A DNA stretch of 47,493 bases. Source: Selaginella moellendorffii (Eukaryota > Plantae > Lycopodiophyta). A program made the position numbers and the translations under genes. This document shows positions 9,345-36,766 of the stretch, piece after piece. Position 1 is the stretch's first letter. Each line of letters starts with the position of its first letter. The notes beneath the pieces are model-generated. The model saw only the letters and a program-made list of their open reading frames with translations. It was not told the DNA's origin and ran no database searches. The stretch covers positions 88,981 through 136,473 of the forward strand of contig NW_003314374.1 of NCBI RefSeq assembly GCF_000143415.4. Direction: 5' to 3'.

Positions 9345-10930
9345 TAATTACGAACATGAACATGGAACACAAACACGAGCCTTAGATATTAGAAACCCGA
9401 CGACAGAACACAATCACAGCTCACGATGGCTCACAAATACTAGTGAATATATTAAGAATATTTTATTTTTTATTCTAGGAAAATTTTGTTTTTTATTATA
9501 TACGAACTACTCAAACATCCTACAAATCATCATTATCTTCAACTTCACAATCTTCGACATTATCTCCATCCTCCTCTTCCTCTCATGACTTAAGCTTGTC
9601 TTCCTAATGAAGAATTGTCTCTAGTACTTTGTAGCTCACAAAATTGTTGTGGTCATTGTCATTTTTGCAAGTTAATAATTTGCTATTGCAAGCCAAAAAA
9701 ACCAAATCTGTTGTCCTATCCATAGTAAGTTTATTCCTCTTCTTTGAAGACACATGTTTGAAAGTGCTAAACAATCTTTTCACCAAAGATGACAAGCATG
9801 CTTGACTTAGAACTTGAATGGCCAACTTCTAAAGAGCTGGAATTTCATAACAATAGTCCTCCCACCAATGTACAATTCCCTTCTTAGTGCGATTAACATT
9901 AACATCAATTGAGTTGAAAATGCCTCCTATCCTTTTGTAAATTAAAAGTTCACCCCGTATCACATCCCTCTCACTAGATGTAAACATGGGTAAAAATAAG
10001 CATTCCAATCCTTCATGACTTCTCTATTGGCATGCTTTTCATGCTCTTGAAATTCAAGGTCCAACATATATGCCACTGAGTGCATGAACGAGTGATACTT
10101 ATGCCGCCAGTTAGACATTATCTAATAAAGTTCCATATACCTACTATAATTCGATTGTCCTTCCTCTAAACTTGCTTCCAACCTATTCATACACTTATAT
10201 ATTTTTCCAATTGCAAGTACATCACCGTCCACAAGACAAAGTAGCAACATAACATCCTTGGACACCTCTAATATATCTTTAACCTGTTCCCAAAAATGGT
10301 CATCAAAAATGGTTTCATAATTGTCTCTGCCTACTCTCGTTTCGACTTAAGCTTTGCTCTATAAAGCATATGAACATCTATTGTAGAGCTTCCTGGAGCT
10401 CCACCAGCCTCTCTATCGGCCAAACCTTATATCACAATAGCGCAACATTTGCTTATGAGTAAACTCTAGTGGCAATGCCACCATATGAGAGTGGTTTCTA
10501 AAAAAGCTCACTAAAGCTTTTCCTTGCTCCAAAAACCTTACCATCCATAGAAGTTCACCGAAGTCTTTCAAGGTATTGTTCAAGTAATGGGCAAAACATG
10601 TTGCCCATACCTTTGTTTTAGAATTGTTATTGATGCTCTATTCACATTTTTCCCATCCATTACAACCATAATAATGTTCTCTACACCCACAATGCTAATG
10701 CCTTCTTCCCAGCAACGCAAAGTATTCTCAGCTATTTTTCCTGTTGAGGAAATATCGATAGCCTTCAGAAAAGCTACCTGTCCTTGACTATATGCCACAA
10801 GCCCCTTGATATGCTGATTCCTCCTATCTACCCACCTATTTGCACATATGGTTACACCCCTCTACTCCCATTGCCTCTTCATGGACACCATCTCAATGTC
10901 AATAAATCCTGAACATGCTTTCCAACATTA
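9345..10930 (-). mobile_element. hAT-superfamily DNA transposase relic (DUF659-type core plus C-terminal dimerisation domain)
   Basis: 9604-9825 gives AIQVLSQACLSSLVKRLFSTFKHVSSKKRNKL...DLVF (hATC-like). 10580-10798 gives FLKAIDISSTGK...VGVENIIMVVMDG (DUF659-like). AACAC-rich subterminal-like repeats lie near 9350-9420. TIRs were not resolved, so boundaries are approximate. Confidence 0.85.
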
Positions 10931-12405
10931 AATTTGATGCATAACTGTCCTTGATCTCTATTCTGTTCCACACATTATTAAGTTGACGAACAACAATCAA
11001 AAGTCTTTTCCTTTGGCTAGACCAATCTTTGTTGTCATCCTCAAGTTGTAAATTGTGTAACTTCTTAGTATCTAATATATTATTATATGAAGATTGACCA
11101 TTCTTCTTGCTTTGTTATTTATTCTTCAACTGTTATTAATTAGCTTTGTAGTGTCCAAACTCATTGTAATGATAATAACCTTGCCTATAATTCTTCACAA
11201 AGAATTTCTATTTTTTCTACTCCTTCACATCAAAAGTAACCACTATAGACTTCAACTTATGATATTTAATCTTATCCTTATATCCATGGCAATCATCACA
11301 ATAGTTCTCAATTAAAGGATTCCTTAAATGCTTACAAGACTTGTGTTTGTCATTGTCAAGTTAATGAGTTACATCAAAGAACTCCTCTAAATTCTTTGTA
11401 GGCTAGGAATGACATAAGTGTTGCCTCATGCTCTCATTATAAATATCATCAATAAAATAAAATTTGTTCTAATCTAGATCCTTTATTGAAATGTGGCTAA
11501 TCAAGTAAGTGAGCTTCTTAATATAATCCTGAAGTGTCTTTTTCCCTTATTGGAAATATCAAAGTTTTATGTAAGTATTCTCCACGTCATAATGAGGGGA
11601 AAAACATAGACAAAAGCAATTTCAAATTCATCTATGATAAACTTAAATAGTTTTTTGTTTGCAACACAAAACTCCTCAAGCGAATTCCATCATTGAAAAT
11701 CTGTATTACACAAAACTATTGAAATAACCACTAAACTTTTGCATTTGGAGTTTTTCTAGTAGCCAAAGACTTTTTCACATTAACTAGCCAAACTAAATAA
11801 ACCATCTCCTAAAAAAGTTAGAATCTTGAATTAATCCATCAAAAAAGTCTTATTTGGAGTACTACCATTGTTAGCTTGGAGTGCCTTAATACACCCATGC
11901 ATCATAACTTACGTATTGTAACTATTTATCTTGTCTTGCATTTCTTGTTAATTTTTGTTGAGGTTTTGCATTATGTGCCAACTTTGACCATGTAGTTAAC
12001 ATGGGTTAAAGGGAAGCTTAAAGGTATATTAAAGCATGGATTTAAGGTAATGAATTTAAAATTTTTGGGTGATTGGGTACCTCAATAATATAGTCTAGGC
12101 AAAAATAAGTGTCTTTATTTTTGTTATTTAGCACCAAGCTTTAAAATCAAGTGATCACCTAACATATGGTGTAAGAGATAGGATCTTAACAATAATTATA
12201 ACGACAATATAATTGATTCAATTGATAGTGTGGCTGAAAAATACTTAGATCTGGTGGCTGGAATAAAACTACTTTGTGGCTTGATTATTTAGTGAGGACT
12301 AGAGTGAAAGGTAAACAATGCGTTATATTTCTATATGATTATTACAAATAGAAGTATTTCTAGCATAGTATATGGAATCAATTTCTAGGAAGGTAATAAT
12401 CTTCA

Positions 12406-22107: not shown

Positions 22108-24749
22108 ATGGGAGGGGGTGACACTTGCAGCAGCGACGATGATGAAGAGGAGCAACGACACGAGCCGCCGCTCAAGCGCATGAAGCTCTCCTCGCCTCAC
22201 CAAGATTCTCGACGCCAGCACCATAATCTCTTGGCGCCATTTCCACTGCTGTCGCCCAGGCAATCCTCGTCGCTCTACCGCTCGCCAAAGCCCCACGAAT
22301 CGCTCGGCATGGGTCCGCCGATTGAGAGCCAGATGATGGGGAGCAAGAAGCAAATCCGCCGCGTGGAGTTTGTCCGGATCATCACGCAAGCCTTGTACTC
22401 GCTGGGCTACTCTCGCGCTGCGGCATTGGTGGAGGAGGAATCCGGGGTCCCCTTGCAGCTGCCGGTGGTGTCCGACTTTCGCCGCGAGGTTTTGGACGGG
22501 AGGTGGGAGGAGAGCGTCGCCACTCTCGCCAAAATTGGTCCTTTACTGGACGAGACGCACAAGCTGGCGGCGTTCCTTATCCTCCAGCAAAAGTTCCTGG
22601 AGCTTCTTGTGGATCGCGGCGACGTTCTTGGCGCCCTGCGAACTTTGCGGACGGAGATCTCGCCGCTGGGCGTGAACAGGCAACGCGTCCATGAGCTGGC
22701 GAGCTGTGTCGTTTGTCCCACCCGAGGGGATATCTTGGAGAAAGTGGAGTGGAAGGGAAGCGACACCGAGGCCAGGATGGCGCTGCTGGAAAAAATACAA
22801 GCTTTGCTGCCGCCACACATTATGATCCCGGAGAGGCGGCTAGAACACCTTGTGGAGCAGGCGCTGGCGGTGCAGCGCGAGGGATGTATTTTCCACAACT
22901 CCGCTGAGACGGCACTGTCGCTCTATACCGACCACCAATGCGGACGTGACCAGATCCCGACTGAAACGGTCCAGGTACTTCATACTTCGTGCTTGTAGCT
23001 AGTTGTGGCTGGGTTTTGGTGAATGTAGGTTGCAGCAGTGTGTTTGTCTGTGTGTTTTGCCTCTTTGGTGAACTGTTCTTGGCTCTGTGTGTGCGTTTTT
23101 TCGACAATGTTATTTTAATTCTGATCTTTCTATACATAGTCCATTCTGGATTGATTCGTGTGTCCTGGGCTTCCATGTTTCAGGTACTAGAGGCTCACGA
23201 CAATGAAGTATGGTACTTACAATTCTCGCGTGATGGCAGACACTTGGCGTCCGCATCTAAGGATTGTACAGCTATAATATGGGAGGTCAGTGCTCATGGA
23301 TCTAGTTGCTTTCGCTTGGATGCTCTGGAGTCAGTTCTAGATCTTTTCTTTTCGTTCTTTTCCGCATTTGCTGTCTGAATTCGCTACCTATTTCAGTTTT
23401 GAATTGGTTTTTCTGCTCCTGCTCTAGTTCTCGTGTCTCGGTCATACAGTTGTTTTCTCTTCTTATGGTGCCTCCATGTACAGGTTGTAGATGATGATTT
23501 TGTAAGGCGGAAGCATACACTTGCCGGACATCACAAATCGGTATCGTTCGTAGCGTGGAGTCCAGACGACTCTATGATCTTGACGTGTGGAACTGAGGAG
23601 GCAGTGAAGCTGTGGGATACAGCAACAGGGGAATGCAAGCACACGTTTCAGAAGGCGAGCCACGGTTTTACGTCGTGTGCTTGGTTTCCGGACGGGAAAA
23701 CCTTCGTCACCGGGGCCGTTGATAAGTGCATGTACAGGTGGGACTTGAGTGGTGCCGAGCTAGAAGTGTGGAAACCCAGGATGCCCAGGATCATCGACTT
23801 GGCCGTGACGCCTGACGGCAACAACGTGGTGTGCATCTGCCACGACAAAGACATTCGAGTTTTCAACTTGGAGGACAAGACCGAGAGACTGATCGAGGAG
23901 GATCACTCCATCACCTCGTTATCAGTCTCGCTCGACGGCCGCTACCTCCTCGTCAACTTGGTGAGCCAGGAGATCCACTTATGGGACATGGCCTTGAACT
24001 CCAGGTCGCCGTGCAAGTACAAGGGCCATAGGCAGGGGCGCTACGTGATAAGGTCGTGCTTTGGTGGATCCGATCACGCATTTATTGTTAGTGGGAGTGA
24101 AGATTCTCAGGTAAATCTTTCTTCCTTTCCTAGTTCTTCGTTCTCTTAGTTCCGTCCTAGTTCTAGTGTGTTCACTTGCTTGCTCTTGTTTTCCATTCTT
24201 CGATCTTAGCTTCTTCACGGAGAGTTCTTAGTTCTTGAGTTCTCACTTTGCTGCCTCCACAAGTTTCTGTGAGTTTCCTTTGTTTGTTCTTGCGTTGCTT
24301 CGAGCTTAGTTTTGATGTTACCTTAGCTTCTTCTCGTACTGTCCTCGACTACTTTTTTAGTTCTTGAGTTCTCACTTTGCCTCCAAGTTTGTCCTTTGCT
24401 TGTTCTTGCTTTGCTTCGGGTTTAGTTTTGATGCTCTTGAACGGGTTTTAACTCTTGTTTCCTTTCTTGTCAGGTGTACATATGGCATAGGGGCAATGGG
24501 GAATTGCTAGAGGTGCTACCAGGCCATTCCGGCACTGTGAATTGCGTGAGCTGGAATCCCAGCAATCCTCACATGTTTGCATCGGCTAGCGACGATCACA
24601 CCATCCGGATTTGGGGCCTGAGCTCCACTAAGCGCGACCGCCACCGCCGATCGTCCGCAGCAGCGCCCACTCCAAAGAGCAACGGTGGAATTAGCCACAT
24701 TGTCAATGGCGGAACCCGAGAGCTTCTCGAGAACCTCAGACCTTTCTAA
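22108..24749 (+). CDS. WDR26-like LisH/CTLH + WD40 protein (GID/CTLH E3 ligase complex subunit), 4 exons
   Basis: Exons 22108-22974, 23184-23285, 23484-24110 and 24474-24749. [15 protein letters not shown] (LisH), [12 protein letters not shown] (CTLH), [29 protein letters not shown] repeats, [30 protein letters not shown]. Confidence 0.93.
24205..24435. repeat. Imperfect tandem duplication (about 115 bp x2) in intron 3 of the WD40 gene
   Basis: CTTAGCTTCTTC...TTAGTTCTTGAGTTCTCACTTTGC...TTAGTTTTGATG occurs twice in succession. Confidence 0.8.
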
Positions 24750-25026
24750 AAAGAATTCCAAATTCTCTCTAGTACACCCTTCCTTCTTCCTCCACTTTTT
24801 TCTAGGGCTCTTCCACGAACAATAATGGCCACTCGTTACTGATTCCTACAAATCTATTGGAGAATTCCCATTGGCCCACGTCATTCGTATTCTTGTGGCC
24901 TGTGATGAAGCAGTACATCTGCGTGGCCACTTTCCATATCGGGCTTTTAGCCAATCCGCCTGTTTTAGAAAGTCAGCATATTCGTTTTGCGCATTCATTT
25001 TGCCGGGAATATGCCCTGGCACAGGA

Positions 25027-26239
25027 ATGGCGATGGCGAGAAGAATGGGCGCTTCCCTTGCGCGGCGCGGCGTCGCCGGCGGCCGGGTTTTGCTCGCGAG
25101 GAGGAGCTCTTCCGGATGCGCCTTGGCTGCCGCTAGCGATTTCGATGAGTATCGGCGGTCGATCAACGGCGGGATCAGCCACAAGGCGCTTCTTGTGGAT
25201 GCGGCGGGCACGCTCTTGATCCCGGCACAGCCGGCTGCTCAGGTATGGCCGCGGCGCCTCCTTCCCTCCTCTTCTTGATCCTTCCTGGCGAATATTTCAA
25301 CCCTTTCCTCGAAGATTTCGTCTCGCATTTTGATCTGATCGAGTTTCGTGCCAAGGTCTACCGCGAGATCGGGAAGAAATATGGCGTGACGTACACGGAG
25401 CAAGAAATTCTGGCCCGGTATCGATGGGCATACTCGCAGCCGTGGTACCAGTCGCGATTGAGGTGACTCTTCTTCCCTTTCTTCTCTTTGTCTAGAAGAT
25501 TGATCGAAGCTCTCAAACAAATGTTTCGATCTAGATATGTCCAAGACGCGCGGCCTTTCTGGGAGTACATCGTACAGCACGCCTCTGGGTGTTCGAGCAA
25601 AGAATATTTCGAGGAGCTGTATCATTACTACGAAACACCTGAGGTATGATCACGCACAGTGTTTTCTCCTTTCGAGAAAGCTTTGTTTAATCTATCCTCT
25701 TCCTTTTGATGATGCGTGACAGGCCTGGTATGTCTCCGACCCAGATGCTGGTATGGTCTTTCAAGCTCTCAAAGACGCGGGTGTCAAGATCGCCGTCGTC
25801 TCAAACTTTGATACCAGGCTGAGGCCGCTGATGAACTCGCTGGGATGTGATCACTGGTTTGATGCCATGGCGATATCCGCGGAGGTGTGTTGTTTTCTTG
25901 TCTCTTCATCTGACTTGGTTTTTTTTGTTTTGTTTTTTTCTTTTTCTTTCTAGGTGGAAGCCGAGAAGCCAAACCCGACAATTTTCTTGCATGCGTGTGA
26001 ATTGGTGGGAGTCAAACCGGAAGACGCTGTGCACGTTGGAGATGACCGACGCAACGATATCTGGGGTGCCAGGGATGCAGGCTGCGACGCTTGGCTCTGG
26101 GGTGGAGATGTTCAATCGTTTCGTGATGTAAGCTTTCTTGTCTCTTTTTTTCCTCGTATTATCTAGCTTCACACTTACAAAATCATAACAGGTTGCAACT
26201 AGAATGGGAGTGAATCTCCCCCAGGCGAAGGCGAGGTAA
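25027..26239 (+). CDS. HAD-superfamily hydrolase, HDHD3/REG-2-like, 6 exons, probable organellar presequence
   Basis: Exons 25027-25242, 25356-25462, 25535-25643, 25723-25884, 25954-26127 and 26192-26239. Motifs LLVDAAGTL, VVSNFDTRL, EKPNPTIF and HVGDDRRNDIWGARDAG. Confidence 0.92.
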
Positions 26240-27448
26240 AGTGTAAGGCGAGCTCCAAGTGAAAGAAAAAGTACAGTCGCCTCTTGTATAGTTTCCCGGC
26301 TTTTGATACAGAGTTACGCTGTAAAGCATACTAATGTGTGGACTGCTTGCAGCTGAGAACTGCATTGTAATTTTTCTTCTTATAATGACGCGAGTTTGGA
26401 CTGCCATCTCTATCAGCTCAGCGTAAATCTCGTTTCTTTTCCCAATGTTTCTTTATCGCGGTTTTGCAGCAGGGCAGCGCAAAGCGAACCAAGCTGGCAA
26501 CAGGTCCTAGGGCAAAAGAGCCTGTTGGTACGCACTGCCATCTATTTTCTGAGTTTCAACGTTATACTAAGCTATACTACAGGGAGATGGAAAGGCCAGC
26601 CAGCGAGAAACGCTCAGAGCCCGTCCAGGAAAAAGGCGATTTGCTTTGTCGTCAGTGCCGACTAAAGCAGCATTTGTTTTGTGTGGACTCTTCATCAAAG
26701 TTAAAGGTAGCACAGCAATGAAACCGAGAGCACGACGAGACACAACTACCTTAAAATCGGGTACGACATTCGGGCACCATTGTTTTCTAACACCTTTTCT
26801 AACACCAACTTTGTGTTGCTGGAGCTAAGTTGTCTTAGTCACGCGCAGGGACCCAATGGCAAGAAATTTGATAAACAAGCCGACGCCTCGTCTTCTCCAG
26901 CTCGCTGTATTGTGAAAGCTCCGGCCTTTGTTTGCGAGGTGGCCGACCCATGCGAGCGCCGACGGAGCAATCAGGTGAGACCGATGAATCCCACACATTT
27001 TGATTTCCTCTCAGAGCCATTTTCTTTGCTTTGCAGGTGACTCTTTGTTTCCCGTGCGCAGGGAATGAATATCGATTTCCTGGGATAGCAAAAGCCTCGG
27101 AATGATAGCTGTTGCTTCGTACGCACGAGAGTATGTCTGGCCAGACTTCACGTGTGCGACACAAGGTCCTCTCGTTGTGCTTCTCCCATGATCATGACTC
27201 GTTTTTCTTCTTGTTTTCCAGCTCTTGCGCGTTTGCTTAATGCTCGCTTGGTTGCTTCCACAGTACAAGGAGCGTATGCAAAGATGGCGGTAGACGCATC
27301 CGGAATCGCGACAGAGAATCTGTGCATGGCAAGTGTTTGTTTTCTTTCTTCTCCGGATTGTAATAACACACTTTATCTCCGATGGTATGTACAGAGTTGC
27401 CGCATACGTCACTTGACGACAGTGAAGGAAAGCCTCCCTATGTCCCAG

Positions 27449-27455
27449 TATAAAA
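27449..27455 (+). promoter_or_regulatory. TATA box of the secreted peptide gene
   Basis: TATAAAA about 135 nt upstream of ATG 27586. Confidence 0.6.
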
Positions 27456-27585
27456 GGCCAGGTTTGTTCTGGATTTTATTCATTCGTTCTTTCCTTCTTC
27501 GGAGTGTTCTGTGTGTGTGTGTGTGTTTGTGTGGTCCTCTCACAACACAAGCTCTATCCATCTTCTCCAGACTTGCAGAGTGATC

Positions 27586-28133
27586 ATGAGTGCCAATCTC
27601 GTTCTTCTTATCCTGGCAATGCTGCTTCTCTCGTTCCTGGGAGACACTGCTCGTCTCTTGCCTGCTGCTGAAGGTAGTCTAGTCGGTATTTTGTTTGAAA
27701 ATCCAAGCTCACTCGTGGTGTGTCTCGCTTGCAGGAAACGGGAATGACATTGGAGCATCAGTGGAAGAACCGGGAACGCATGAGCAAGAGGTAGGAGAGC
27801 ACGCGAGAAGAGAGAGAGAGAGAGAGAGTGAGAGAGTGTGTGTTTTGAATTTTTATGAATTCCTAGAGTTTTTATTGACACTTGTGTTATGGATAGATAT
27901 ATTCTCGAAAACTTTGGGTGAGGCTGGATTATTCAGGCCCTGGAACTCATCCAGGAAATCCTCATGAACATCAACTTGAGGAGAATGTGGATTACTATCC
28001 TCCTCGCAACCATAATGACTCACCACCGACCCACAAGCACATCCCTGGCAATGAGGTTCATCCTGAGCGACACTTGGTGGATGCATTAGACTACGTCCCT
28101 GCTCGCACCCACACGCCATCGCCAGTGCACTAA
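27586..28133 (+). CDS. Small secreted peptide precursor (126 aa) with three Asp-Tyr (sulfotyrosine-type, RGF/GLV/PSY-like) motifs, 3 exons
   Basis: Exons 27586-27673, 27735-27790 and 27897-28133 (GT-AG, phases 1 and 0) give MSANLVLLILAMLLLSFLGDTARLLPAAEGNGNDIGASVEEPGTHEQEIYSRKLWVRLDYSGPGTHPGNPHEHQLEENVDYYPPRNHNDSPPTHKHIPGNEVHPERHLVDALDYVPARTHTPSPVH. It has a hydrophobic signal peptide, an acidic prodomain and an RKL motif. Confidence 0.8.
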
Positions 28134-29766
28134 ACAAGCAGAGCTCTTGCTCTACAAACAGGACCACGTCCTTTGAATCCACATAAAAATGCTGAGAAAA
28201 AAAAGAGAGGTAAATCCGAGTGTGAGCTTCGTCTCCTCCCACGATCGTCTCGCATTCGGTGTAAATCAGCTAGAGAAGAAGATCAGGTAGGAGAGTTACA
28301 AGTAACACAGCGTGAGCAATAAACTTTGGTTTTGGATTAAATTGAGTGAGATTTGATTGTTTTTGTCAGTATCATGTCTTGGGTGATTTTATTCTGATGC
28401 AGCGCGCGCTTTGAAACATCACGCTCGAGCAAACAGCTGTAACTTACAAACCGCATCCCAAATCTGTACCCACAGATTGAGTTTCTGTTGATCTGATTGG
28501 AATAAGCCTGGCATGCTATAAGTTGGGAAGAGAGAAACTCCAAAACAAAAGATATATGCAGAGTTCTTGCTCCGGACGGATTCTAGCTTCCATTTCCCTT
28601 CCAATCATCCAAAGTGTTGTTTTTTTCTCTTGAAACCATACCACCAAATCTGCAAGATCTCCTTCCAAATGCCCATGAAAAAAATATTGGGCTTTCTCTT
28701 GCGTTACTACGACTTCCTCCACCTTTTGTATTTTCCCGTGTCAGGCAATAGCGAAGATTTGGTTGTACTTATCCTCGTTACAACACGAGGAACCCATGAT
28801 TGACAGCAACTTGCAAACTCATTGGCACACTCAGCTCATCCGCGGCCAGGCCCCGCTCCTTGTTTGGAATTTCTAAGTTTCTAGTGGAGGGAAGCGTGTG
28901 ATAACGCCATGATTCATCCACAGAGAGCAAAGAAATATATATGGCCATTCTCGCCGAAGTGCTCGGTGGGGGCCTGGCTTTCTCTGGGCATGGACGAGTG
29001 AGTAGTCATCTCCAACATATAGATGGCAAAGAGGTTAGAAGAGAAAAAAGAAGCAAACAGTACCGCAAACAAGCTTTCTCTGCGTTGTTTGTAACAGTAA
29101 GCAATTGACCTTTGCTCTTGAAGCTTTGAAACTGATTTGAAAGAGTCGCGTCTCGTCGCGTCATTCATTCGCTCCACATTGCACCGGTGTCAGCTTTGTT
29201 CTTCTCTCCCTGCACAAAAAATCTGATGATTCAGAGAACAAAGTGGCTTGCTATATTATCACAGCCATCATACCCAGCCGGAAGTGAGCCTCGAATATCA
29301 TCCCCTCCCAATCCTAGTGACATCCATGCTCCAGATTCACCACGCTCCAAAAGCGATAAAGCAGCAAGCCACCACGCGACGCTTCTCCTCCTAATCCTCC
29401 TCCTCCGCCTGCGTGACACCTTCTTAGTCTTAGCATGAAGTTCAAAGCTAAGAAAGAACAAAAGAGTTTCACTTACACTCGTCACTTCGCATGCACCTGA
29501 CCTGTCCATTCTAAATCTTGAAATCTTTTTATATTTACCCCATTGACCACACACACTCCCTGTGCATGAATCTCATAAGCGAGCGAGTCAATGGTATCTA
29601 CACACAGTGAACGCCTCACCTGTAAACAGGAGACCGCCTTGTTGAGAAAACAAAGAAAGAAAATCGCCTAAAAAGAAACGAGGAATGTTGCTCTTACTTT
29701 GACGCCTTTTACCGTAGAAAACGTCGACAAGTCAGATCGCTCATGACGCAGAATAAGCCGCCCCAG

Positions 29767-31546
29767 CTACAGCTGTGCCTCGTCATCGGGCGGCCTTTCA
29801 TCTTTGTAGCTGAACAGGAGGGGGGCTTCCGACTTTGACAAGGCGGTCAGGATTGCGCTAGAGAGAAGACAAGGCACCAAATACAGCAGAGCGGGCTGGG
29901 CTGCACCAGAGACAGAGTTCGCCACTGCACACAAAGAAAGAGCACTTGTTTTGTAGCACAGACCAGGCCAGACCATAAAACTTACCAACCGTGAGAGTCA
30001 GTCCAGCTACGTAAGCAATAACTGAGTTTGAAAAGTATGTCTTTTGTGGTGCTGCCGGGATTGTATTGTTCTGGAGCCCGGCACACCTGGCTTGGTCGAA
30101 CCGGAGCATAAGAGCTATAAGCAACCCTGGAGCAGCGATGTCACCCAGGCCCAGGATCGATTCAGGGTGTGCAACTTCCGCCTGGAATCATCTTTAACAA
30201 GGACAGATTAACGAACCGACTAGTTTTCATACCTTCCAGCTTGGAAACACGAGTTTAACAGGCCCATCAAAAGCTGACGAGGTCGCCACCTGATCCAGAC
30301 TAATTCAAGTTAAAACTCTTTTCTTGCAGAAATCCCGTTTAGAAAACGTACCGTGACCATCACATTGTCACCAAAAATTTGAGAAGAACCAAAAACCCAA
30401 AAAACGTCATAGAGCAGCAGCCCGCAAAGCATCACGGCAGCGGTACTGAAGCTGCGAGGAAACACCCCAGAGGTTCAGGAACACAGATTAAAAAATGTAG
30501 AACTGCTAGTCACCTTCCAACAGAAAGAAGTTGCAAGAGCTCGGTCACAATACATACTGCCATAAGATTGTTGAACGTGAAAGGTGCTCCGGGTTGCTTG
30601 CTGGCGTAAGCGACTCCAATTCCAGCTGCAAGAATTGTTCTAAGAACACAGCCAATAACTCGTGGAAAAAACTCGTGGCCATACCAAGCAATGCAATAAT
30701 GTCGGCCGCAGTGACGGTAAGGCAGACAGGTTTTCCTTTGTCCGAAGCAAGCCAAGATGGCACGTCTAGAAAACAAAAGAATTATCAGCACAAAAAAATG
30801 TAGAAAAAAAAAAAAACAAAATAAAGCACTTACTGATTCGGACTGGAAGTGAATCCAGACGCGGGAAGAGCAACTTGAGAGGATTGGTTAAGTTATTTGC
30901 CACGGCAAAAGCTCCAGCGCAGCTTAGATAGATCGAGATGAACGTACGTAGATCGAGCTCCGGGAAGAACCTCAAGAGGCAGTAAAAACCAAAGAGTGAT
31001 ATGGAGCACAACACAGGCGCGGCGAGGCCTTGCTTGAAAGAAACCTGTTGCGTTTGCTGCCTCGCTAAACTAAGAAGGAAACAATGCAATGGACCCCTTT
31101 AGAATAAAAGAGGATGAAAAGGGAGCAAAGAAATACAGACCTTCGGTGGCTTCCAACGTAGACTGTCCACAGCGACAGGGAAGTAAAATAGATCGCGGCC
31201 GACCACTCGAATCGAGGCAACAATGGCACAACTGGGACAGCAACCAGCAAAGCTCCATAGGCAGCCTACACGCAAACAAGAATGATAATCTCCTTTGAAA
31301 AAAGAACCTACAATCGGAGACACTGCTCAGTCTTACCAGCTCTTTCGTAGTCCTCCCCCATTGCCATCCCCTCAGCTCCAGCACGTCGCCATTGCCATCG
31401 CTAGTCGCCGCGCACACGAATCTCACCCCGCGTCGCTGGAATTGCCGAAGAATGTAACGCCGCTCGCGCTCCAGTCGAGCACCTCCGCTGGCTGCGACAG
31501 GGGAAGACGAGGTCGAGAAGAGCGCCAAGCTCAATGGCAACACCAT
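29767..31546 (-). CDS. Signal peptide peptidase-like intramembrane aspartyl protease (peptidase A22B), 9 exons
   Basis: Exons 31546-31337, 31265-31141, 31069-30834, 30765-30685, 30625-30514, 30451-30352, 30289-30233, 30181-29986 and 29924-29767. Catalytic motifs LLLYDVFWVF and ILGLGDI, plus QPALLYLVP. Confidence 0.93.
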
Positions 31547-34088
31547 AGCTGATACCTAAAATGGTAACACTATCAATTCAAATTTTAAGTTCTGTAAATT
31601 AATAATTTGCTGCTGTTTTCTTTTTTTTTAATGCAATTTTTGGAGTGATATAGTCACATTCTAACTGGTTTGTATTAGTGATGAATAAGAATAAAGAATT
31701 AGAGAAAATTTTAACTATGTTACTAAAAAATTATAAAATTCATAATTAAAATATCTAAAATAAATGAAGAAACATAAAAAGAAATTACCCTCTTTTATGT
31801 TTGAAATATGCAAGAATTTTTTGTTATCATAACAAGTAAATATTTATTTAGAAAAACAGTATCAGAAAAATAACAACCAATAGATTAAGAATATCCTAAA
31901 ATATGTGGATATTCTAAGTACACCATATATATAGCTTAATATAATCTATTAAAAAGAACTTTGGTTTTTATATTAGAAAAAGCATCAACTACAATAATCA
32001 GAAGGGAAAAGCATGGCTTCTAATCCAAGTATTTTAAAAGCAATTTTATTTTTGCACTAACTTCCATTGTTTTCTATAGTTCTATAGTTAATACTCTAAT
32101 TGTGTTTTGTTAATATTGTTATTAGTCCCATATATTTTCAGATTATAATTTAATTTTTGTTAAAATTAAGATTACCATAATTGCAAGCGGTTATTTCACC
32201 TTCATATCAAAGTTTATGTCCATTGAATCTAAACAGTCCAATTAAAATACTTTTTTTGCAGCAAGACAAGCTAGGTATCACTCTAAAACTTGCATGTTAA
32301 TACACACTATTATCTGTTTTATGAGTATCAAGGTTATACTAAGCAATACTATAGCAAGCACAAAGTCTGTGCCAGAAAAGGTAATTGACTTTATCATCAG
32401 TACAAAATATCATTTGTTTTGTTTTGTGTAACTTTGTCCCACCAAAGAGAAAAGCAACTCTCACAGGTTTGGGAGGAGTCTCTTAAGCACAACTCTGGAC
32501 CTGTAACATGGAACAATGGCCTCATGGATTCAGAAAAAGCTTTCGTTCAATTTTCCAAATTGGTTCTCCCATTTTTTATTTGGACAGGCTGCAAGAGAAG
32601 CAAACCAATGTTATTCTCAAGGGAATGCAAGAGCACTTAGAAAGTATGGGGAATGGGATGAGCTACTTGCAAAACACCTTTGTAAAGTGGCTTAGTTTTC
32701 TAATTATCACAAAATATGATTGAAGCCAATTTTTAGTGATTGATTCATATACTTCTTGAGTGTTCTCTAAGATTGAAATAAACTTATTCTCTGGACAATG
32801 ATAAAGAGAACATCATTCAAATAACTTTGTTGGAGTAGTTAGCTTTCTTGCTCTTGCTCTTGGTATAGTAGCAATTAGGAGTTTGTGTGAGTGTTGAGAG
32901 CTTGACATAGAGATATTTGCTACAATAATGCATATTAGAGAGATAGTAGATAACCATCCCAATCAAAGTTCAAGTACTTTAGCATTAGCCATAGAATTCT
33001 CTAGCCACTGAATAACCTTGAAGTTTTCAATTTGATTTTTTAAGGCTGACTAAACAATATAGCTAACTAAATTCTTTCACTTCAATAATAAAGTAATTGC
33101 AACATTCTTACTCTCTAATAGTATATAAAAACTATATAAGTACATATAAAGCTTCTTAAAATCCCAAACCACTCTAGATACTCCTTCTCTATCATAGAAT
33201 AGTTTATCTTAGTTGGTTGCAAAGTATAATTAATATATGCAATAGGATAACATTGGCTAGGGACATCTATACTCTCTTACATCAAAATGCCCCCAAGACC
33301 AATATCACAACCATCCTTAAGCAAGATGAAATGCCTAATGTAGTTGGGGTATGCCAAAACTAGAAGAATTGTTAACATTTACATCAAATTTCCAATTTGC
33401 AATCTTTTATAATGAAATATGGCATTAATGACTTCAAGAATGTTCATAATGGTGTAATGTGATAATAATAATAATTAATAAAATATTTGAAATATTGCAC
33501 CTTACTAAGAAAGTGTTGTATGTCATGCATACACTTTAGTGTAAGGAACTTCAAAATTGTTATAAGTTTATCAATATCAACTTGTAAACCTTCGCAAAAA
33601 GTGTGGTATCCAAAATAACTCATATCCTTAAAAAATATACACTTAAACTATGAAGTGCACTTGAATTTAGAGTTGAATTTCAAGCCTTTTGCACTAAAAG
33701 ATGAAGGTTCAATATGCACTTAAAATCTCCTATAAGCACAAGCTCCCCATATTTAGCTCTTATATACAAAACAGTGTTAAATAAAGTTTATCACAATTTC
33801 AATATTCCAATGGTTTAATGTGAGGAGGTGATTAATTAGAGAAATATGGAACTTAAGCTTAAAGCTAAGTTAAATGCAAAACAAAAAGTGATATAACTCA
33901 ATAAAAGCTAAACTAATGTCTCAAATGGTTGGCCATACTTCCAACTACTATCCCTACTATATATTTAAAACCCTTCATAACCCCTTATTTTGGGCTTTCA
34001 CCCTAGTCCCAAGAGTTAGTCTTTGGGAAAAACTTAAAAACTTGTTAAATATGGAATAGTACTATATCATGAATTAGATGTAGAAATA

Positions 34089-35924: not shown

Positions 35925-36766
35925 TGCTGTGAATGTGACTTCAAGTATCGAAAGTTAGCTATTGGCTATCCTTTCAGATATTTTTTCTTTACTGCCATGA
36001 CGGCAGGAGGTCAGTATTGTTGGACCTTTTATCAGTCCCTCTTGTTCAAGTGTTAATAAATTGGACTTTGCATCTATACTTGGCCAGACGAGTATAAGGA
36101 CGGAATTCTTAAGTATCTATTTAGCCAAGCATACTTGGCCCGGCTTGTTAATTCTCTTTTGCTCTGTCTTGCATTGGTTTGACAAAAACCCTTATGTATT
36201 AAGACTAGTCCCTCAATATCGCTGGACAATAGCTTACCGTGTCTACTAAACACCCTCACTATCATGCTTTTTGTGTTAATTTCATTTTGGTCCCAAATGC
36301 TATTTATAGAAAGTGTTTAGATTTTCTCATTTGGCATATTTACGGAATGTAGAGATTGTTCTAAACACAATGGTGTTTGTCCTGTGTCCAAATTCGCAAT
36401 CTAGGGATATTCCATATTTAGTAAGTTTTGAGCTTGTCCCAGAAACCAACTCCTGATACTAAGGGAAGCTTGGGGTGACAACCCAAAGTGTGTGTTCTTT
36501 AGGAGGGGGGGCGGCTTCCAAATGTATAGTAGGGATAATGGGTAGGTTGGGCATGGCTGACCAACTTGAAGCATAGTCTAGCTCCTATTTGCATGTTTGT
36601 CTTGAAATAAGGCCTTGAAACTTGGGTTCCACACCATTGTCCTTTGGACATATAGCATGTGGCATGTGGCATATGACACGTGGCAGATAGAGGGTTTAGG
36701 TTCTACTTTATGATTATCCTACAGTAAATCACCATAGGATAAAGGGTAAAAACCATGTGTGCTACA
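35925..36766 (+). mobile_element. Family A solo LTR (842 bp, internally deleted) inserted antisense into the chromodomain of copy 2
   Basis: TG...CA termini (TGCTGTGAATG...GTGCTACA) with a perfect ATTAA TSD (35920-35924 and 36767-36771). Confidence 0.93.

Follow-up and report, generated by a model that had tools for sequence, protein, structure and literature searches.

Does a single lycophyte gene encode one precursor from which several RGF-type peptides could be released? The question is raised by a short locus of Selaginella moellendorffii on contig NW_003314374.1 (scaffold GL377678.1), within a stretch of 47,493 nucleotides that is called the window here and to which all coordinates refer; positions 24102-31133 of it are identical to the locus record used for the comparisons (L001). 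At 27586 to 28133 on the forward strand, three exons join into a reading frame that begins with a predicted signal peptide, continues into an acidic prodomain and ends in three different units that each start with Asp-Tyr. The locus is very probably a divergent member of the RGF/GLV/CLEL family, placed by its residue pattern in the lycophyte “Group H”, and the three-module layout is, judged against published sequences, new for the RGF family, the family itself being known. The fuller reading, that this is a functional nuclear gene for a secreted, multi-ligand RGF-type pre-pro-peptide of ~126 residues which would signal through RGI-type leucine-rich repeat receptor kinases, is held at about an even balance. 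The gene model consists of the following parts.

27586..27673, forward strand: exon 1, with the start codon and the predicted signal peptide; 29 codons plus 1 nt, donor GAAG/GTAGTC
27674..27734, forward strand: intron 1, 61 nt, GT-AG; 98.4% identity across haplotypes
27735..27790, forward strand: exon 2, acidic prodomain, (G)NGNDIGASVEEPGTHEQE; both boundaries also present in the NCBI model (P0001) on the same scaffold
27791..27896, forward strand: intron 2, 106 nt, GT-AG, with a (GA)n tract at 27805-27836
27897..28133, forward strand: exon 3, 78 codons plus the stop codon at 28131-28133; carries all three modules

The coding length (88+56+237 = 381 nt) corresponds to 126 codons and a stop, so that the frame arithmetic holds, and the TATA box, signal peptide, acidic prodomain and three-exon structure with GT-AG introns that an earlier note on this DNA had described could all be read again from the sequence. 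Exon 1 translates as MSANLVLLILAMLLLSFLGDTARLLPAAE, in which the residues MSAN are followed by a 14-residue uncharged hydrophobic core, LVLLILAMLLLSFL, with a mean Kyte-Doolittle value of 3.2; the N-terminal secretory signal peptide that belongs to Group H would thus be supplied by the predicted exon 1 peptide. The same architecture is found in a syntenic sister copy on the other haplotype, on GL377620.1 (L002; LOC9661910 / SELMODRAFT_445289), which was recovered by a second search and is annotated as an unnamed protein. There the JGI model (EFJ15992.1 / SELMODRAFT_445289, P0005, 126 residues) has the same three exons, and three NCBI isoforms share all of its junctions. Exon 1 is 96.6% identical between the copies and is used by both the JGI and the NCBI models of the sister copy, and the junction of exons 2 and 3 is independently present in the NCBI model on GL377678.1. 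Retention of intron 2 would shift the frame and lead to a stop at 27967 (open reading frame (ORF) 27695..27967). An alternative acceptor at 27867 was rejected, as a stop is reached after three codons, and so was a minus-strand gene (a 129-residue ORF at 27853..28242), for which the sister copy gives 23 amino acid changes and a stop. The suggestion that exon 2 holds a decayed fourth unit was given up: the likeness consists of a lone shared PGTH with no Asp-Tyr, and the sister allele reads PGMH.

The three modules, each consisting of a pre-sequence and an Asp-Tyr unit, lie within exon 3 as follows.

27906..27926, forward strand: pre-sequence of module 1, RKLWVRL; RKLW fits the S1P/SBT6.1 motif R-X-(L/V/I)-X and is kept in the sister allele
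27927..27965, forward strand: unit 1, DYSGPGTHPGNPH, 13 residues; His8, Pro9, Gly10 and a terminal His13
27969..27989, forward strand: pre-sequence of module 2, HQLEENV
27990..28034, forward strand: unit 2, DYYPPRNHNDSPPTH, 15 residues; His8, Asn9-Asp10, Pro-Pro at 12-13 and a terminal His15
28035..28067, forward strand: spacer KHIPGNEVHPE between unit 2 and the pre-sequence of module 3, with three amino acid differences from the sister allele
28068..28088, forward strand: pre-sequence of module 3, RHLVDAL; RHLV fits R-X-(L/V/I)-X
28089..28130, forward strand: unit 3, DYVPARTHTPSPVH, 14 residues; His8, Thr9-Pro10 and a terminal His14, followed directly by the stop codon

The positions of the units (27927, 27990 and 28089, the last one C-terminal) and the presence of His8 and a terminal His in each, as first proposed, hold in the translation. 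Module 3 with its pre-sequence reads ERHLVDALDYVPARTHTPSPVH, and the three modules can be aligned as [R/H]-x-L-x-x-x-(L/V)-D-Y-x5-H-...-P-..-H, in which the Leu, the Asp, the Tyr, His8, the Pro and the terminal His are invariant. RKLW and RHLV each stand seven residues before an Asp-Tyr and are conserved in both alleles. In a six-frame translation of the window (94,982 residues), the pattern DY-x5-H-x4-6-H has four matches, of which three fall within 71 residues of exon 3. When the residues of exon 3 were shuffled 200,000 times, three matches were never obtained and two occurred at a frequency of 2e-5; the motif count in this exon is far beyond chance expectation. The remaining match in the window, DYPTVNHHRIKGKNH at 36712 on the forward strand, stands isolated in an AT-rich region and looks like a chance hit. 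Most likely a single RGF module was duplicated in tandem within the gene to give the three modules. A 22-nt direct repeat, in which 27910-27931 and 27973-27994 share 73% identity at a spacing of 63 nt, links modules 1 and 2, and this would be a weak but consistent trace of such a duplication.

The two haplotype copies made it feasible to ask whether the frame is under selection, since their exons align without gaps. Exon 3 carries 26 nucleotide differences, 17 of them at codon position 3, and the non-synonymous (dN) and synonymous (dS) divergences are 0.046 and 0.45, respectively, which gives a dN/dS of 0.10. Codons with a single change comprise 15 synonymous ones (over 53 sites) and 7 non-synonymous ones (over 181 sites; Fisher p = 1.8e-6). 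The model frame accumulates 8 amino acid changes in 79 codons as compared to 19-23 in four other frames; the fifth alternative frame has 10 changes, but also 8-9 stop codons. Because dN/dS is low, the differences are biased to the third position and the other frames fare worse, the frame of exon 3 is coding sequence under purifying selection. Neither copy has lost a splice site or the frame, although the local divergence is 11-14%. Within the units, amino acid changes are confined to residues 3-4 in unit 1 and residue 14 in unit 2, and every unit has kept Asp1, Tyr2, His8, its late Pro and its terminal His at a unit dS of 0.28. At the protein level unit 3 is the same in the two alleles, which differ there by two synonymous changes.

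The assignment to a family was made against the RGF-like sequences of lycophytes compiled by Furumizu and Sawa in 2021 (PMC8329595), where Group H is described by a conserved His8 and a conserved last His; in most of them the protein ends with the peptide region, and atypical 14-mers also occur. An Asp-Tyr start and His8 are found in all three units at this locus, and a terminal His that also ends the protein is found in unit 3, while units 1 and 2, which also have a terminal His, lie inside the protein. Unit 1 matches DYSGPGSHPPHNH of Lycopodiella and DYQGPGTHPPHSH of Pseudolycopodiella at 9 of 13 residues (PMC8329595 supplement), and the tail of unit 2, SPPTH, recurs in a published atypical Isoetes sequence, DYNQPVPSPPTHNFE. 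Module 3 resembles ..RRVLVDNIDYREAATHPPPKNHHV of S. kraussiana (RVLVDNI-DYREAATHPPPKNH), ..RSLVDHIDYRGATIHPPPKNHHV of S. acanthonota and ..RRELVDEIDYPGVSTHPPPKGH.. of S. selaginoides; when compared by eye, module 3 and its pre-sequence share 12 of 22 positions with the S. kraussiana sequence, and the pre-sequence R-x-LVD-x-(I/L)-DY is common to the RGF-like sequences of all three species. Among the ESM-Atlas neighbours of the sister protein (P0005), those with names are RGF8, RGF3 and GOLVEN 9 clusters with scores of 0.90-0.92, which serve as a lead only. A secreted-type precursor with three Asp-Tyr units of RGF character is supported. The proposal in the earlier note of a new, lineage-specific family did not survive, as His8, the terminal His and the C-terminal peptide are the published definition of Group H (PMC8329595).

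The closest likeness is to a Selaginella subgroup of Group H with the pattern ..R-x-LVD-x-I-DY-x4-T/I-HPPPK-x-H (S. kraussiana ZFGK-2006594, S. acanthonota ZYCD-2034010 and S. selaginoides KUXM-2034620), which has in common with the locus a signal peptide, a short acidic prodomain, the Asp-Tyr start, His8, a terminal His, a peptide at or near the C-terminus, the R-x-L-V-D-x-(I/L) pre-sequence and, in unit 3, the “atypical” length of 14 residues. The Pro-rich core of these relatives is HPPP or HPP, whereas this gene has HTPSP, HPGNP and HNDSPP. Arabidopsis RGF1/GLV11, DYSNPGHHPPRHN, is a 13-residue Asp-Tyr peptide that shares D1, Y2, S3, P5, G6, H8 and P9 with unit 1; it ends in Asn rather than in the His of the units here, and Pro10, which is hydroxylated in RGF1, is missing from units 1 and 2. 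Arabidopsis CLEL6 and CLEL9 have, like the locus, upstream S1P-type R-X-(L/V/I)-X sites and an Asp before the Tyr (PMC7162652). RGF1 and CLEL6/9 carry one module in contrast to three here. Some CLE and CEP precursors hold several domains (cited in PMC8708909), with short modified ligand motifs likewise arranged in tandem and separated by spacers in one secreted protein; CLE and CEP are, however, other peptide families and not Tyr-sulfated. The nearest precedent for several RGF-type peptides per locus is found in the conifer CLEL genes described by Strabala et al. in 2014 (PMC4016512), with more than one distinct RGF-type peptide per locus, as here. The conifer domains lie on alternative 3′ exons, so that each spliced transcript yields one peptide, whereas at the Selaginella locus a single exon and a single polypeptide hold all three. 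Like the units here, the PSY and CIF peptides begin with Asp-Tyr, are rich in Pro and belong to a secreted precursor, but they are 18-21 residues long with other conserved positions, as compared to 13-15 residues here.

How the ligands might be released can be outlined by analogy with CLEL6/9, whose maturation involves an S1P motif, an Asp-dependent step and a requirement of TPST for Asp (PMC7162652). Orthologues of TPST and of the RGI receptors, with the RxGG motif that reads sulfo-Tyr, were reported in S. moellendorffii (PMC8462819). The precursor would enter the endoplasmic reticulum by means of its signal peptide, which would then be removed; a Golgi subtilase of the S1P/SBT6.1 type would cleave at RKLW and RHLV; TPST would sulfate each Tyr that is preceded by Asp, and some of the Pro residues would be hydroxylated; finally, Asp-dependent subtilases would expose the N-terminal Asp. 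Secretion, sulfation, processing and receptor are all predicted on these grounds. Unit 3 is, going by its place in the protein, the surest candidate ligand, because the protein ends there and a C-terminal cut would be unnecessary. Units 1 and 2 would require C-terminal trimming; in other family members, C-terminal extensions imply that trimming occurs (PMC8329595). The release of at least one of units 1 and 2 besides unit 3 is given even or slightly better odds, more than a single C-terminal ligand, and the lean towards several ligands rests on exon 3 being constrained along its full length and on the internal units keeping the family positions. The release of all three is, from the sequence of the units, plausible but unproven.

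Several observations weigh against a multi-ligand RGF precursor and have to be set beside this evidence. The published relatives compared here are all single-module (the full-length S. kraussiana protein has 69 residues) as opposed to three modules at this locus, and a HMMER search of 1.84 billion representatives returned no relative beyond the two haplotype copies, hence no orthologue with three modules; a word-index protein search with exon 3 gave no match either, the annotated proteins being longer than the length window of that search. Units 1 and 2 have no known mechanism of C-terminal release, and trimming is undocumented for Group H. By a rough estimate, five Arg residues could give two R-x-(L/V/I)-x sites by chance. 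The constraint is not specific to the units, with 3 amino acid changes in 42 unit codons and 5 in 36 others (p = 0.46) and a dN/dS of 0.12 and 0.08, respectively; the comparison of units with spacers that had been suggested as a test of the gene is therefore non-discriminating. The NCBI protein on this scaffold, XP_024520489.1, skips the signal-peptide exon. The Pro9-Pro10 pair is absent: Pro10 alone is present in unit 3 and Pro9 alone in unit 1, and unit 2 has neither of the two. This pair is “otherwise highly conserved” but does not define Group H (PMC8329595), and position 9 varies among published family members (HSP, HEP); the locus was therefore filed as a divergent member and not excluded. 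Lastly, the Pfam models PF21529 (GLV1-2) and PF27951 (RGF3) gave no match at E <= 10 to exon 1, exon 3, P0005 or P0001. As just 11-43% of the members of Atlas clusters named RGF/GLV carry these two domains, the miss is weak evidence.

The alternative that deserves most attention is that unit 3 alone is released and active, and that units 1 and 2 are leftovers of duplication in the prodomain, where they may be sulfated or guide processing, for instance, or be idle as ligands. This is possible, and it receives clearly less weight than the release of several ligands. It would agree with the single RGF domain found in each of the 203 RGFs surveyed (PMC8708909), with the position of Group H peptides, which normally end the protein as only unit 3 does here, and with the pre-sequence of module 3, which matches that of the single-module Selaginella relatives; moreover, unit 3 is alone in being identical in both alleles and in having Pro10, while unit 1 has Gly10 and unit 2 extends to 15 residues with Asn-Asp at 9-10. 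Yet in both alleles D1, Y2, H8 and the final His of units 1 and 2 are kept in spite of the synonymous divergence of the units (dS 0.28) and of the exon (dS 0.45), unit 1 shares 9 of 13 residues with published lycophyte ligands, and the whole of exon 3 evolves at a dN/dS of ~0.1, even though the RGF prodomain has been described as “variable” (PMC7162652).

That the locus encodes Asp-Tyr sulfopeptides that are not functionally RGF, but of PSY, CIF or another type, or of a new class with a different receptor, is considered unlikely. The departure of all three units from the canonical H-P-P-x-x-H/N core and the lack of a match to the Pfam RGF models would fit it, and Asp-Tyr peptides of separate families are hard to distinguish (PMC8462819). 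By inspection, however, no unit fits PSY1, DYGDPSANPKHDPGVPPS, or the CIF pattern DYxxxxPxPPLxxPxPF (PMC8462819), so that identity with PSY or CIF was rejected: PSY1 and CIF place Asn8/His11 or P-x-P-P-L where the units have His8, the length of 13-15 residues is that of RGF peptides, and the alignment of unit 3 and its pre-sequence with Selaginella RGF-like sequences, together with the RGF/GLV names of the Atlas neighbours, points to RGF. A chance ORF, a decaying pseudogene or an annotation artefact is the least probable account by far. There is no named homologue and no Pfam domain, and the N-terminus differs between the NCBI and JGI models, but a non-working gene is hard to reconcile with the low dN/dS and third-position bias of exon 3, with splice sites and a frame that stay intact at such local divergence, and with three family motifs in 71 residues as compared to a lone stray match among the remaining ~95,000 residues of the six frames. 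Gene structure, motifs, purifying selection and family resemblance are directly observed at the locus.

The preferred three-exon model and the current annotation differ at the 5′ side, for which the following features are relevant.

27102-27461 and 27735-28133, forward strand: NCBI model XP_024520489.1 / LOC9659969, which skips the signal-peptide exon; its predicted product is non-secreted
27449..27457, forward strand: putative TATA box TATAAAAGG, the same sequence in the sister haplotype; coding in the NCBI model (..SQYKRPG)
27510..27533, forward strand: (TG)12 microsatellite in the putative 5′ untranslated region, 8 nt longer than in the sister haplotype
28318..28323, forward strand: AATAAA, a possible poly(A) signal ~185 nt 3′ of the stop codon

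The single protein found by HMMER was XP_024520489.1 (P0001, LOC9659969, 176 residues, “uncharacterized protein”), which consists of exons 2 and 3 as modelled here and of an N-terminus taken from an upstream ORF via a donor at 27461. An exact look-up of the 126-residue JGI protein on contigs returned no record. The start codon at 27586 is the first ATG downstream of TATAAAAGG in both haplotypes. In the sister copy, the NCBI isoforms extend the ORF upstream, where no stop happens to interrupt the stretch on that haplotype; the 8-nt (TG)n indel and a 3-nt indel between the haplotypes fall inside this extension, which was rejected as coding sequence. Because of these indels, of which the 8-nt one shifts the frame, the stretch upstream of 27586 is taken as 5′ untranslated region. 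On GL377678.1, we read the NCBI model without the signal-peptide exon as a probable ORF-maximising artefact. Contrary to the expectation that annotation could easily miss the gene, it is annotated on both haplotypes, though unnamed; the model on this haplotype does lose the signal peptide, an annotation error that the comparison exposes.

The divergence between the haplotypes is itself uneven. A block of raised divergence comprises exon 2, intron 2 and exon 3 and is compared with 10625-11011 of the sister locus.

27735..28133, no strand: block of raised haplotype divergence

Inside the block the haplotypes differ at 10.9% of positions (42/387) compared to 1.39% (199/14362) outside, an excess of ~8-fold; the block contains the highest 200-bp divergence windows among 147, and its edges are sharp, with the intron 1/exon 2 boundary on one side and the stop codon on the other. 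The (GA)16 tract of intron 2 shows a 12-nt length polymorphism between the haplotypes. A simple coalescent assigns an 8-fold excess a tail probability of ~4e-4 per segment, which leaves chance plausible once the whole genome is considered. Old balanced alleles, conversion from an unseen or unannotated paralogue, or chance deep coalescence are possible causes. The boldest combination, a first RGF polyprotein that yields three sulfated ligands, possibly with differing receptor preference, and a block that represents two old alleles under balancing selection, is improbable. A separate loss of similarity is seen at 31600-32430 and beyond, with 7-8% divergence at 31.6-31.9 kb, then a patch of 88% identity, after which the alignment is lost; the sequence past that stretch is AT-rich (31-36% GC between 32 and 42 kb). 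The loss of collinearity from 31600 is likely due to a repeat or to an insertion specific to one haplotype.

The neighbouring genes have the same order and orientation on both haplotypes.

up to 24749, forward strand: WD40/LisH gene
25027-26239, forward strand: HAD hydrolase gene
29767-31133, reverse strand: Peptidase_A22B (signal peptide peptidase family) gene

That a Peptidase_A22B gene adjoins a gene for a secreted-type peptide is probably a coincidence.

With regard to published surveys, the statement that RGF precursors normally carry one motif is borne out by the 203 of 203 single-domain RGFs, unlike some CLE and CEP precursors (PMC8708909). The gene is absent from the lists of five S. 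moellendorffii proteins (404292, 407655, 412527, 438132 and 441866) in two surveys of 2021; a pan-species RGF paper of 2026 counts 6 RGF members for S. moellendorffii. A literature search for the locus names of the gene, for multi-domain RGFs and for SmRGF returned nothing relevant.

The stakes are moderate, as family, pathway and logic are already known and the function of this gene is argued from its sequence. The three natural variants of 13, 14 and 15 residues, with or without Pro10, would be useful for probing the tolerance of the RGI receptors. If the gene is truly multi-ligand, the RGF family, like CLE and CEP, would also have explored a design with several ligands in one precursor. In flowering plants the root stem-cell niche is under the control of RGF/GOLVEN peptides, and the roots of lycophytes have an independent origin; a complete set of lycophyte RGF genes, to which this locus would belong, bears on how root programmes were assembled.

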